Source: Entomortierella parvispora E1425 (taxonomy: Eukaryota > Fungi > Mortierellomycota). Taken from it: DNA of 64,000 nucleotides. The translations under genes and the position numbers were made by a program. The notes under the pieces were generated by a model. It was given only the letters and a program-made list of their open reading frames with translations, was not told the DNA's origin and made no database searches. Below, one piece after another: positions 24,340 through 32,010 of this stretch (positions within the stretch are counted from its first letter, which is position 1; every line of letters begins with the position of its first letter). Location: assembly GCA_020891255.1 (NCBI GenBank), contig BQFW01000001.1, positions 2,666,001 through 2,730,000 of the forward strand, given 5' to 3'.

Positions 24340-26425
24340 ATGATTCTCGAAAATGAGGAATACCAGAACATCATTGACAAGATCAATAAGATCCGCAGCT
24401 ATGGTCTGAGCAAGATGATTACTCTTCCACAGATCGCCATCCTGGGCGACCAATCCAGCGGCAAGTCCAGTGTCCTCGAGGCCATCACCAAGCTTTCGTT
24501 CCCAAGAGACAAGGATACATGTACTCGTTTCGCCACTCAAGTCAGTCTTCGGCAGAGCGAGCGTGCCGGTTTGTCGGCCCATATCGACGGCGAACAAGAG
24601 TTCAACAAGAGGTTCCATGCTCTAGAGGCCACGGATAGCATTCATCCAATCATCAATGAGGCCAATCGCGTTCTTTGCACAAGAGTCGATATCAGCGACA
24701 AGGTCCTTGAGATCACCATCTCGGGTCCCACTTTGTCGCCGCTTACTGTCATTGACCTCCCAGGTACGCGCTCTATTTTGTCTGCGATAAAAGTTATACT
24801 CTCGAATAGCAGGTGATGGATGTCCACTAATCTTTTGTATTTCTTTTTACTTTGCAGGCTACATCAACACGACCGTCGATGGGCAAGACAAGAGTATTGT
24901 CGAGACCATTCGAACCATCAACACTCGGTACATCAAGGACAGTCGCACCATCATCTTGGCTGTCGTCCCCGCCAATGTTGATCTGAACAACATCTTTGTG
25001 CTCGGAGAAGCAGAGCGATACGATCCTTCGAACGAACGCACGATCCCCATCGTGACCAAACCCGACACGGTCGAGGACGATTTGCTTCCAGGATTGGTGG
25101 AGACCATCCTCAACAGACGCAAATTCATGAGACTTGGCTACCTGGTCATGAAAAACTCGAGCTACAGGGACATTGATACCCCTTGGGAAGATGCCAGGTT
25201 GAAAGAGGAAAAGTTCTTCAAGTCGAAGCCGCTGTGGGCCAAAGTGCCAGACTCTATGAAGGGACGCACAAGTGTCAAGGATTTCCTGGGCCGATTGCTT
25301 GTCGAACATATCAAGAAGGAACTGCCCCAACTGAAACTGGAACTCCTTGCCCTCATGAGCGTCTGCGAGAAGGAAGTTGCCGGTCTGGGGACGCCTATCT
25401 CCAGCATCACCAGTGCAAAGCAAAAGTACTTGGGGAGCATCATGGACCTCAAGAGCTCCCTGATTGAGCTCCTGGATGGCCGTTACACGCTCGATTACAT
25501 CAACAGTCGCAAGTTTGATGCCACAGCCACGCCGGCAACTTTATCGACCGAGGACGAGGACAACGATCTCATTGTGCCCACCTCGACCGCCGACCAAGGG
25601 TTCATTCGATCGGGCCTTCACCGGCGCTACGAAAACTTCAGCAGTGCCTTGAGCAAAGACAAGTATATCCTGCCCTCGGACAAGATTGCAGAACTGGTGT
25701 TGCGATACAAAGGAAATGAGCTGCCCGGCTTTATCTCGTTCACCACGTTTACACAGATTTACATCCAAACATTGGATCACTGGCACGAAATTACCAAGGT
25801 CCATGTGCGTAGCATGCACACGTATTTCTTTAGTGCTGTTTCCAGTTACATTGCACATACATCGGATCCCCTGTTGAAGGACATACTCCAGCTAGAGTTT
25901 GCAAAGTTCTACGCTTCCCAAGTCGGCAAGATCGACGATGCCATTGAGAACATCTTTACGGATGAGAGCTCGCCGTTTACCTTGAACAAGTACTACTATG
26001 ATAATATCCTCAGGAGTCGACATGAGAAAGCGCAAAAAAGACTGCGCGATGCCGTTGATCGTTTCAATACCTATTGCAACGAAACGGGCTCATACTCGGA
26101 CACAGCAGCAATGAATATCTTCATGCAAACCCACAAGATCGAAGAATGGAACGTCAGCGAAAATGAGAAACACGCGGTGGAGGACTTGACAGATGTGCTT
26201 CTGTCCTATTGCAAGGTGGCACGCAAACGCATCGTCGATGTGGTGGTTCTGCAGTCCATTGAACGGTACATGATCAAGCAAATCAACCTCTATTTCAATC
26301 TGTTGATTGCGGTTGACGACAGCACAGTCTCCGACAAACTTCTTGAAACGCCTCACAAGATCGCGCAGCGCGATGAACTTCAAAATCGGTTGCAGGTGCT
26401 CCGAAGGAGCCTCATGGAGATGTAG
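24340..26425 (+). CDS. Mx-like dynamin-family GTPase, paralog 1 (about 663 aa, intron 24764-24857)
   Basis: G1 GDQSSGKSS, G2 CTRFAT, G3 DLPG and G4 TKPD are present, with a middle domain and GED (SYCKVARKRIVD). There is no PH domain or B-insert. Confidence 0.92.
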
Positions 26426-26850
26426 TCCACTTGTTTCTGGAGTATGGGAAGTATGGAAAGGGTATGAAATAGTCCCCTTGCAGAGAGAAAAAAAAAGAAA
26501 GAAAAAAAAAAGTCGGATTCTTGAACTAGCCCGCTGTTGATTCATTGGTGACCGAGATCTCTTTTGTTGCAAGCGGCGCCTGTTGCATGGATTCACTTGT
26601 GCACTTTACTGAGGATCTTTTAGTTGCGGTCTTCATGGATAACTAGAATCCACAGGACGATAAGGAATACTGATAAGAAAGCGCAGAGATCTGGCTTGGA
26701 TTGACCCCCCACTGTCGTGGGCAGGAAAATGAACCAAAGACCAGTGTGCGCCCATCGTCACCTCTTCCCCCTATTTTTTTTTAATGTTACTGTACCTTTT
26801 TTTTTGGGGGGGGGGGGCTCTTGCTTGTGCACAGACAGGTGGTGTTTCTC

Positions 26851-26934
26851 TGGCGCGTATCTGATTACAAAAAGGCGAAGTACCGCAAGGGGGTATTCCT
26901 GTGGCGCGTATTTGATTCAAAAAGGCAAAGTACG
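26851..26934 (+). repeat. Direct repeat, 2 x about 33 bp, upstream of dynamin paralog 2
   Basis: TGGCGCGTATCTGATTACAAAAAGGCGAAGTAC at 26851 and TGGCGCGTATTTGATTCAAAAAGGCAAAGTAC at 26902. Confidence 0.75.
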
Positions 26935-27263
26935 GCTCGATTCTCGTCCCCATGATGTGGAAACAAAGCGTGTTCCGCCAAGGATGCTACAGTCGATTTG
27001 TCCTCATCCTTTGGGCTCCACTCTTTTTTTTTTTTCAAAAACTGCAATTCCTCGATGTCGTCCATGTGCTTGTTTGTGTGGTGTGTGTGGCATGTGCGTG
27101 TTTTTTTTTTTTCTTTTTTTGCGAGCAATGGCAAAGTATTCGCATGAAAGCAACCCAGAGTATTGATGATAAAAGGAGGCCAAAAGGTCGACCCTTTGCA
27201 ATGTTCTGGAACAAACTCCTCCCCTCTCACCTCTCCCCGACCCTCCTACCTACGCCCACCACG

Positions 27264-29358
27264 ATGTTTGAAAGCGAGGAATACCAGAACATCATCGACA
27301 AGATCAACAAGATCCGTAGCTATGGTCTGAACAAGATGATCACGATCCCGCAGATCGCCATCCTGGGCGACCAGTCTAGCGGCAAGTCCAGTGTCCTCGA
27401 GGCCATTACCAAGCTTTCGTTCCCTCGAAACATCGATACTTGCACTCGTTTCGCCACTCAAGTCAGTCTTCGGCAGAGCGAGCGCGCAGGTCTGTCGGCT
27501 CATATCGACGACGAACACGACTTTAACAAAAAGTACAATGCAATGGAGGCCACGGCCAACATCAATCCCATTATCAATGAAGCCAATCGCATTCTTTGCT
27601 CGAGAGTGGAGATCAGCGACAAGGTCCTTGAGATCACCATCTCGGGTCCCACTTTGTCGCCGCTTACTGTCATTGACCTCCCAGGTACGCGCTCTATTTT
27701 GTCTGCGATAAAAGTTATACTCTCGAATAGCAGGTGATGGATGTCCACTAATCTTTTGTATTTCTTTTTACTTTGCAGGCTACATCAACACGACCGTCGA
27801 TGGGCAAGACAAGAGTATTGTCGAGACCATTCGAACCATCAACACTCGGTACATCAAGGACAGTCGCACCATCATCTTGGCTGTCGTCCCCGCCAATGTT
27901 GATCTGAACAACATCTTTGTGCTCGGAGAAGCAGAGCGATACGATCCTTCGAACGAACGTACGATCCCCATCGTGACCAAACCCGACACGGTCGAGGACG
28001 ATTTGCTTCCAAGCCTGGTTGAGACCATCCTCAACAAACGCAAATTCATGAGACTTGGTTACTTGGTCATGAAAAACTCGAGTTTCAGGGACATTGAATT
28101 GCCCTGGGACACTGCCAGGCTGAAAGAAGAAGAGTTTTTCAATTCATCGCCCCTATGGGCTCAGGTGCCAGAGTCCCGTAAAGGACGCGCCAGTGTGGAG
28201 AAATTCTTGGGCCGATTGCTCGTCGATCATATCAAGAAAGAACTGCCTCAACTGAAGCTCGAAGTCCTCGCCCTGATAGGCGTCTGTGAAAAAGAGATCG
28301 CAGTTCTTGGTCCTCCTGTTTCCAACCTCACGAGTGCAAAACAAAAGTACCTGAGTAGTATCATGAATCTCAAAAGCTCTCTGACCGAACTTTTGGATGG
28401 CCGATACACGCTCGAGTATATCAACGCTCAGAAAGCCGAGACCACAGCTGAACCGAATCCTGTGTTGGACGAGGACGACGACAGCAATGATCTTTCTGTA
28501 CCAGCTTTGACGACCGACCAAGGGTTCATTCGATCGGGCCTTTACAAGCGTTACGAAAACTTTAGTAACGCCTTGAACAAAGACAAGTTCATCCTCTCCA
28601 AGGACAAGGTCACTGAGCTCGTCATCCGGTACAAGGGGAACGAACTACCGGGCTTCATCTCGTTTACCACGTTCACGCAGATTTACACCCAAACGTTGAG
28701 TCATTGGCATGACATTACAAAGGTGCGTGTGCTTGATATGCACAGGTATTTCTTCAAGGCCGTTTCCGACTACATTGCGTTCACGTCGGATCCATTGCTG
28801 AAGAACGTACTGCAGCTAGAGTTTGCAAAGTTCTACTCTTCCCAAATCATCAAGATTGACGACGTCGTTGAGAATATCTTCACGGATGAAGGCTCACCGT
28901 TCACAATGAACAAGTACTACTTTGACACTATTATGAAAAAGCGACAAGAGAAGGCAGAGAAGAAACAGCGCGAACAGTTGGACAAATGGAAGGGTCATAT
29001 TGAACAAGCCACGCTCGGAACAAAGGTCCTGAACAGCACAAATTACGCAAATTGCTTGAATACCCTCAAGATCGAGGACTGGACTGTCAGCGAAAACGAG
29101 AAGCACGCCGTTGAAGACCTAACGGACGAGCTTCTGTCCTACTGCAAAGTGGCGCGCAAGCGAATTGTCGATGTAGTCGTTCTGCAGTCTATTGAGCGAT
29201 ACATGATCAAGCAAATCAACCTTTATTTCGATCTGTTGATCGCTGTCGACGACAACACCATCTCGAGCATGCTTCTTGAGAGCCCCTCCAAGATTGCTCA
29301 ACGCGATGAAATTCAAAATAGGTTGCATGTACTCCAAAAGAGTCTCTTGGAGCTCTAG
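27264..29358 (+). CDS. Mx-like dynamin-family GTPase, paralog 2 (about 666 aa, intron 27685-27778)
   Basis: Same G1-G4 motifs, intron position and GED as paralog 1; tandem duplicate at an offset of about 2.9 kb. Confidence 0.92.
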
Positions 29359-31464: not shown

Positions 31465-32010
31465 TTATTTTGCTATCTCGTCCTCCCTTCCCCAGTGATC
31501 AAAGGGGTGTATACCGATCCCGAGTTCAGTCTTCAGAGACGCCAGGACCTGGTCATCGCAGTCGTTGTTGGAAAAGTATATTACCACGGGCTCGCGTACC
31601 GAAAGTCGATCTCCTATACTTGTATTGGATCTGCCCATTCGTGCCTGATACTGGTCTAGAGACTTTAGGCGATCCATGTGGATAATGACGTTTATCTCTG
31701 ACGAGCCTGCCTCCATGATTAGCCCCGCTGTTTCATCTGTGGCGATGAGGACCATACAGACTTCGTTTTTGAAAGTTTGAACGCGGTCCTTTTGATGTTG
31801 CTGATCCTGACTAGGATCCATGGTCATGGCTGGACACCTGCAGTCGCTCAATTGACGACAGAGACTCTGGGATCGTTCATAAGAATCCACGTAGATCAGA
31901 GTCAAGTTGGCACAAAGAACGGACAAGACGTGCTTTAGCTTGCAAAAACCTTCGCCGTCATCAACGTGAACATGGTAGTGTTGCTGCTCATCGAAATCAG
32001 AGTTGTCCAT
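31465..32010 (-). CDS. Stand-alone degenerate DEAD-box helicase C-terminal (RecA2) domain, UAP56/Sub2-like (181 aa)
   Basis: QQHYHVHVDDGEGFCKLKHVLSVLCANLTLIYVDSYERSQSL..PAM..FKNEVCMVLIATD aligns by eye with UAP56 [54 protein letters not shown]. Motifs V and VI are degenerate and no N-terminal domain is visible upstream. Confidence 0.75.
   Translation of the reverse strand: MDNSDFDEQQHYHVHVDDGEGFCKLKHVLSVLCANLTLIYVDSYERSQSLCRQLSDCRCPAMTMDPSQDQQHQKDRVQTFKNEVCMVLIATDETAGLIMEAGSSEINVIIHMDRLKSLDQYQARMGRSNTSIGDRLSVREPVVIYFSNNDCDDQVLASLKTELGIGIHPFDHWGREDEIAK

Follow-up and report, generated by a model that had tools for sequence, protein, structure and literature searches.

Introduction

Fungi harbor Mx-like dynamins that belong to an ancient Mx-like lineage. 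Langley, Dietzen, Emerman, Tenthorey, and Malik (PNAS 2025; PMC11789081), the source of the description of the fungal proteins, distinguish two clades, MxF1 and MxF2, with members in Ascomycota, Basidiomycota, chytrids, and Mucoromycota and with dynamic copy number, and argue that the turnover of these genes fits antiviral pressure. Mortierella, tandem pairs, the fungal loop L4, and conversion between fungal copies are not mentioned in this work (PMC11789081), and a single literature search listed no paper on the function of MxF proteins. In MxA, loop L4 is a fast-evolving determinant of specificity (PMC12047444, PMC4687636). The mammalian genes MxA and MxB undergo gene conversion, largely within the bundle signalling element (BSE) and the GTPase (G) domain, and the converted regions may extend into introns (PMC4687636). 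Here we describe two adjacent genes of the soil fungus Entomortierella parvispora E1425 (Mortierellomycota), denoted A (EMPS_00774) and B (EMPS_00775), located on a stretch of 64,000 nucleotides of contig BQFW01000001.1 (positions 2,666,001 to 2,730,000 of the forward strand). This stretch is referred to as the window, and positions are counted from its first letter. The proteins have the same composition as MxF proteins (G domain, BSE, and stalk, no PH domain). They are probably lineage-specific tandem MxF paralogues of a group expanded in Mortierellaceae, whose divergence in the segment equivalent to L4 would reflect nearly neutral change in a loop under weak constraint.

Assignment to the Mx-like lineage

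Gene A (ATG at 24340, stop at 26425) and gene B (27264-29358) are arranged in tandem, consist of two exons each, and encode proteins of 663 and 666 aa, respectively. The initial annotation regarded both as Mx-like rather than as members of the Vps1, Dnm1, or Mgm1 groups, and profile scores, together with a tree that sets the Vps1 and Dnm1 of the genome apart, agree with this assignment. A family profile, built from an alignment of 64 full-length members, scores 233.7 bits against MxA and 232.7 bits against MxB, whereas the scores against solved structures of other dynamins are considerably lower (CmDnm1 170, Vps1 166, dynamin 3 159, Drp1 146, and Mgm1 118 bits). The lead of MxA and MxB over any other dynamin therefore exceeds 60 bits. 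MxA and MxB are the best relatives with solved structures and share with A and B the GxELPGF motif of loop L2 and the helix following L4, although the identity amounts to only ~20-30% and fungi, unlike the hosts of MxA, lack an interferon system. A Foldseek search against the PDB also places MxB and MxA first (E-values from 5e-24 to 3e-20, target-normalised TM-scores of at most 0.74), with dynamin and Drp1 nearly as good as Mx. The fold has no discriminating power here, and fold similarity was not used to assign membership.

The genome encodes its own canonical dynamins at other loci, namely Mgm1 (C12:636k, 568 bits), a Drp1-like Dnm1 (C6:2168k, 192 bits), and Vps1 (C15:1876k, 124 bits). An assignment of A or B as an orthologue of Vps1, Dnm1, or Mgm1 was considered and rejected, since these genes are found elsewhere and the profile reaches only 118-166 bits. 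In a tree of 51 sequences, with the Mgm1 of E. parvispora as outgroup, the Vps1 and Dnm1 of the same genome are split from all Mx-like sequences by a branch of length 2.47 (99% support). The Mortierellaceae family forms a single clade (100% support). Its sister group consists of two ascomycete proteins (97%, with a warning for long branches). A separate group is formed by proteins of chytrids and oomycetes that carry the annotation 'interferon-induced GTP-binding protein Mx'. These are the next closest proteins after the two ascomycete ones (23-32% identity, E-values from 1e-29 to 1e-34). They resemble A and B in length and domain layout, while their GTPase effector domain (GED) is more readily detected by Pfam. 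Among the 120 matches listed for the chytrid 'Mx' protein P0119 no animal Mx is found, only proteins of chytrids, oomycetes, and other protists.

A direct link to the described fungal lineage is provided by the alignment and tree files of Langley et al. (PMC11789081), which contain the Mortierellaceae protein KAF9951223.1 with the G-domain motifs of the family. A 13-mer of this protein, FPRDKGMCTRFAT, is present in 16 Mortierellaceae matches. In the published trees, KAF9951223.1 is placed within the MxF clade and groups with four MxF proteins of Aspergillus fumigatus, beside a group of chytrid and stramenopile proteins (PMC11789081). The files carry no labels for MxF1 and MxF2; by our reading of the taxon order and the newick strings, set against the description in the paper, the family would correspond to the MxF1 branch.

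Two proteins assigned to other groups of fungi, P0041 (Powellomyces hirtus, a chytrid) and P0032 (Apophysomyces ossiformis, Mucorales), nest within the Mortierellaceae clade, the latter as sister to a protein of Linnemannia elongata with 100% support. Their placement suggests either contamination of the assemblies or recent transfer.

The comparison also bears on an alternative, according to which A and B are membrane-remodelling dynamins with a housekeeping or developmental function in organelle or vesicle fission, and the variable segment is a linker similar to InsB or the variable domain, without a role in target recognition. Vps1, Dnm1/Drp1, and Mgm1 share superfamily and fold with A and B, and their stalk tip likewise bears a variable insert at this position (InsB, variable domain). 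A and B match the folds of dynamin and Drp1 equally well. However, the profile favors Mx by more than 60 bits over every membrane dynamin, and the genome harbors the canonical Vps1, Dnm1, and Mgm1 genes elsewhere, in addition to two EHD genes and a possible Fzo-like locus. Moreover, the family is lineage-restricted, multicopy, and non-syntenic. We consider a function in membrane remodelling to be distinctly unlikely.

Divergence at the loops L4 and L1 of the stalk

The proteins A and B are identical in 518 of 668 aligned columns (77.5%), with a highly uneven distribution of differences. Identity amounts to 86% for residues 1-340, 74% for residues 341-521, and 84% for residues 575-663 (GED/BSE), but only 32% (18/57) for residues 522-574, with 24% (9/38) in the core of this segment (residues 537-570). 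The five 34-column windows with the lowest identity in the protein alignment are all located at residues 534-567. The hypervariable segment corresponds to positions 25997-26155 in gene A (core 26042-26143) and to positions 28921-29088 in gene B (residues 522-577). The sharp local divergence of the tandem pair that the initial annotation had placed at these positions is thus correctly located. Its description of G domain and GED as near-identical overstates identities of 84-86%, and a part of the identity in the G domain is due to a 400-nt gene conversion tract. A second variable patch (residues 361-390, identity 48%), which the initial annotation had not pointed out, is found at positions 25514-25603 of gene A and at positions 28435-28527 of gene B (residues 360-390).

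The location of the hypervariable segment is supported by alignment and by predicted topology. The profile matches full-length MxA in two separate blocks, the second spanning MxA 406-652. Within this alignment, the family motif YKGNELPGF is paired with YRGRELPGF in L2 of MxA, residues 533-572 of MxA (including F561) are placed on residues ~518-581 of protein A, and the helix following the variable segment is paired with the helix following L4, in agreement with the correspondence proposed in the initial annotation. AlphaFold models of A and B (mean predicted local distance difference test, pLDDT, of 84.5 and 82.7, respectively) contain stalk helices at residues 482-511 and 519-551/553, followed by residues of low confidence that include a short helix, a long helix that begins at residue 574/577, and a terminal helix at residues 640-662. 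In both models the low-confidence loop lies between the stalk helices alpha3 and alpha4. The variable segment is therefore the L4-equivalent of A and B. In difference to MxA, it comprises ~55 residues and is in part predicted to be a helical extension of alpha3. The second variable patch is modelled as coil (pLDDT 54-67) at the break of the profile alignment (MxA 395-406), which is the L1 position. This acidic insert of ~30 residues is an extra feature relative to MxA and MxB.

The variability of both loops is general to the family and not peculiar to A and B. Across the 64 members, column entropy has its maximum at residues 541-555 of protein A (3.28 bits), followed by residues 361-375 (2.92 bits), and lengths range from 24 to 81 residues for L4 and from 13 to 61 residues for L1. 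A peak of variability at the L4 position is shared with MxA and MxB. Close orthologue pairs are 30-77% identical in L4, compared to 84-91% elsewhere, and the same gradient is observed for paralogue pairs that share a contig and have consecutive locus tags in L. zychae (P0096/P0104) and Mortierella sp. AM989 (P0035/P0059).

For L. elongata, the coding sequence on the contig (L019:10001-12234) differs from the representative protein P0014 by an indel of six residues (SDVSDA) in the acidic repeat of L1, which looks like microsatellite-like length variation within the species. Given this mismatch, the coding sequence was taken from the contig itself.

The position of the variable segment is relevant for two of the possible functions. 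Its first residues are basic and resemble the lipid-binding KKKK stretch of L4 in MxA, a feature in line with a membrane-remodelling dynamin. Conversely, L4 is the specificity determinant of MxA (PMC12047444, PMC4687636), as would be expected if A and B were antiviral restriction factors whose L4 segments have been driven apart by positive selection for different mycoviruses or intracellular parasites.

Selective constraints

Between A and B, dN/dS over the whole gene is 0.135/0.69. In the L4 core, the proportions of nonsynonymous and synonymous differences (pN = 0.67, pS = 0.70) are both saturated, and the resulting omega (the ratio dN/dS) of ~0.8 is uninformative. The GED directly downstream of L4, in contrast, evolves with an omega of 0.01-0.02 at dS of 0.9-2.9 (0.07 for the GED region), and purifying selection acts strongly on the stalk helices as well as on the GED (omega 0.01-0.15). 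The sharp edge of the divergence is explained by an unconstrained loop that abuts one of the most constrained helices. Strong purifying selection on G domain, stalk, and GED is also what a membrane-remodelling dynamin would be expected to exhibit.

The best available relative of A and B is only 68% identical, and a sister orthologue group was used for codon-based tests instead. The set consists of nine orthologues from Linnemannia and Podila, in which L4 aligns free of gaps (IQ-TREE, model GY+F3X4). Omega is 0.207 for the whole gene, 0.157 outside the loops, 0.33 for the 65 codons aligned to L4 of MxA, 0.546 for the 45-codon hypervariable L4 core (which was picked for its variability), and 0.74 for L1. 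Fixing omega = 1 in the L4 core reduces the log-likelihood (lnL) by 5.25 (2dlnL, twice the difference, = 10.5) and is rejected in favor of the lower value. Site models were evaluated with our own code for M0, M1a, and M2a, which matches the lnL of IQ-TREE for M0 (-8841.448). On all columns, M2a results in 2dlnL = 20.1 and omega = 10.7. This signal was discarded as a likely alignment artefact, because the sites with high posterior are all located in columns 380-384 of the indel-rich L1 and because it is gone on ungapped columns. For the 598 ungapped codons without L1, the comparison of M2a and M1a gives 2dlnL = 0.0, that is, no positive selection is detected in these nine sister orthologues, at modest power. 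The neutral class of M1a comprises 24 of the 44 L4-core codons, compared to 56 of 534 codons elsewhere. Within the modest power of the test, and for the sister group of A and B, L4 behaves as a weakly constrained loop with no detectable arms-race interface.

The annotated models P0028 and P0036 (loci L026 and L028) are shorter than those of the other seven orthologues, by 14 G-domain residues and 25 stalk codons, respectively. Both shortfalls are probably annotation errors at intron calls.

These results do not support the initial proposal of a divergence toward different target specificities. Omega in the L4 core is 0.55 and significantly below 1 (2dlnL = 10.5), M2a provides no gain over M1a on ungapped columns (2dlnL = 0.0), and pN of A and B is about equal to pS, both at saturation. 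Positive selection is known for L4 of primate MxA, in contrast to the fungal tests, where none is detected. Furthermore, the equivalent insert is also variable in dynamins without antiviral function, as exemplified by the variable domain of Drp1 and InsB of Vps1. A look-up of expression data listed no RNA run. In favor of restriction factors, apart from the correspondence to L4, are the dynamic copy number with recurrent tandem duplication, the turnover argument of Langley et al., a gene conversion confined to the G domain that mirrors mammalian MxA/MxB (PMC4687636), and the proximity of one paralogue (L004) to DUF4238 genes at a distance of ~1-2 kb. Taken together, we regard antiviral restriction with selected differences in L4 as possible, though unlikely.

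Gene conversion and age of the duplication

Positions 24691-25090 of gene A and 27612-28011 of gene B constitute a tract of 400 nt with one mismatch (position 25039 in gene A), which comprises the end of exon 1, the entire intron, and the start of exon 2. DNA identity in the rest of the gene is 77%, and the probability of such a tract by chance is ~2e-36. Unless the assembly collapsed at this location, the tract is the result of gene conversion. In windows covering alignment columns 121-195, dS between A and B is zero. It amounts to 0.09 over columns 118-251, which bear the tract, to 0.59 in the N-terminal part of the G domain, and to 1.05-1.28 in BSE, stalk, and GED (stalk 1.05, GED 1.21). 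The high values in the latter regions imply that the duplication of A and B is old. The graded values imply repeated homogenisation of the G domain, the newest tract being the 400 nt that include the intron.

The sister relationship of A and B receives 100% support (Shimodaira-Hasegawa-like approximate likelihood ratio test, SH-aLRT) in the full-length tree and also in a tree of stalk and GED columns from which L1 and L4 were excluded. The closest relatives outside the pair come from E. beljakovae and Linnemannia gamsii, and the duplication itself is lineage-specific. The fungal tract is a parallel to the conversion between mammalian MxA and MxB, although tandem duplicates commonly undergo conversion.

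Gene structure and domain architecture

All features of both genes are located on the forward strand. In gene A, exon 1 (24340-24763) encodes the N-terminal BSE helix and the first part of the G domain (Dynamin_N, 66 bits), followed by an intron of 94 nt (24764-24857, GTACGC...TTGCAG, phase 1) directly 3' of the DLPG motif. Exon 2 (24858-26425) encodes the remaining G domain (TKPD at residue 208), the stalk (Dynamin_M), GED/BSE, and the stop codon. Gene B is organized in the same way, with exon 1 at 27264-27684, an intron at 27685-27778 whose 94 nt have the same sequence as the intron of gene A, and exon 2 including the stop codon at 27779-29358; Pfam domains and an AlphaFold model are likewise available for its exon 2. 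The single GT..AG intron thus occupies the same position in both genes. In a scripted comparison, the spliced translations proved identical to the database proteins EMPS_00774 and EMPS_00775. The exons of the window were searched separately, full-length searches made use of the database records that equal the spliced models, and joined exons entered only local alignments, dN/dS estimates, and trees.

The GTPase motifs are intact in A and B, respectively: G1 (GDQSSGKS) at residues 36/35, G3 (DLPG) at residues 139/138, and G4 (TKPD) at residues 208/207. Pfam reports Dynamin_N with 66-67 bits (cut-off 27) and Dynamin_M with 94-98 bits, whereas the GED remains below threshold (16.9 and 20.6 bits, cut-off 21.4). 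Other Pfam matches are weak hits to generic P-loop GTPases on exon 1, each below its cut-off. The proteins have the classical dynamin layout of G domain, BSE, and stalk, as evident from the motifs, Dynamin_M, the fit of the profile to MxA 406-652, and the terminal helix. With 663 and 666 residues, and without PH domain or proline-rich tail, A and B have the layout of the Mx type (~600-700 residues).

The state of the genes is of relevance for a further explanation, namely that one copy is a decaying duplicate and that the divergence of L4 marks the onset of pseudogenisation. The terminal branch of gene A is indeed longer than that of gene B (0.15 versus 0.08). However, reading frames and splice sites are intact in both genes, as are all GTPase motifs, the whole-gene dN/dS is 0.135/0.69, and the GED following L4 evolves with an omega of 0.01-0.02 in both copies. 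Decay of either gene is highly improbable.

Gene copies and genomic context

The E. parvispora genome contains four Mx-like loci. In addition to A and B, these are L004 (C7:1255k), with an open frame of 684 residues that is 40% identical to gene A, and the intronless L003 (C13:299326-299874), with an open frame of 724 residues, 34% identity to gene A, and a long branch in the tree. At a distance of ~1-2 kb from L004, a tandem pair of DUF4238 genes is found (94 and 82 bits; C7:1250235-1255653). Mortierellaceae genomes possess several paralogues, some of which are adjacent, in line with the dynamic copy number described for MxF, with gains and losses in individual lineages. The neighborhoods of family members in related genomes are non-syntenic and include a transposase-like gene and a Crinkler-domain gene. 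In Mortierella alpina, two family members are found 9 kb apart (L020:1-1042 and L020:10001-12169), with the Crinkler-domain gene (L020:18824-20207) ~6.7 kb downstream.

With respect to other dynamin-related genes, the genome encodes two EHD-type ATPases with DUF5600 and EH domains (L014, C13:208997-209269; L015, C11:1477620-1477877). In L. exigua (L023), an EHD gene is located ~5 kb upstream of an Mx-like gene. Locus L010 (C13:139482-140036; Dynamin_N, 47.8 bits) has an in-frame TAG and could represent either a pseudogene of the dynamin family or a gene with an intron. One further Dynamin_N locus in the genome may be Fzo-like. Within the window, an open frame of 181 residues on the reverse strand (31465-32010), whose only match is Helicase_C (27.3 bits), is located 2 kb downstream of gene B. 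Human MxA has been reported to bind UAP56, but we consider the proximity of the frame to gene B a curiosity rather than evidence.

Discussion

The explanation that we consider probable, tandem MxF paralogues with near-neutral drift in L4, can be summarized as follows. Each protein combines a complete G domain, a BSE, and a four-helix stalk without a PH domain and, by analogy to the structures of MxA and dynamin, would assemble via the stalk into GTP-driven oligomers. The two variable loops would be located at the stalk tip and face the bound target, possibly a viral nucleoprotein or capsid, or else a membrane. The G domain has been re-homogenised by gene conversion, and stalk helices and GED are held by purifying selection. 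The surface loops L4 and L1 change almost freely in sequence and length, within the pair as well as within the family. The sharp divergence at L4 would arise from near-neutral drift of this weakly constrained loop, adjacent to a strongly constrained helix. Such drift could nonetheless provide A and B with different binding preferences. A role in defence is plausible but unproven.

Several points weigh against this interpretation. The trees were computed without animal Mx or DRP4, such that the placement with Mx derives from profile scores and one member in a published tree. In principle, an artefact of the assembly could account for the identical 400-nt tract. The L4 core of A and B is saturated, and omega carries no information there. 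Finally, the codon tests cover nine sequences of a sister group, and positive selection in A or B, if episodic or lineage-specific, may have escaped them.

A more specific variant holds that L1 and L4 jointly constitute the surface by which an ancient intracellular defence GTPase of fungi binds its target. Tandem copies, like mammalian MxA and MxB, would share their G domain by conversion and would differ in loop specificity against mycoviruses or bacterial endosymbionts, the latter being common in Mortierellaceae. We rate this variant as rather unlikely.

The kind of protein described here is already known; the conversion tract and the second variable loop are modest new details. A described family thereby gains further members and some anatomical detail, and no new mechanism is demonstrated. 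The conversion restricted to the G domain suggests a general evolutionary route for Mx paralogues. Beyond that, the pair provides a compact natural test case for the open question whether non-animal Mx-like dynamins act in defence (Langley et al. 2025). A and B are direct neighbors with 86% identity in the catalytic domain, including the 400-nt stretch with a single differing base, and with L4 loops unrelated in sequence. The fungus is culturable, and mycoviruses as well as endobacteria are found in members of its family.

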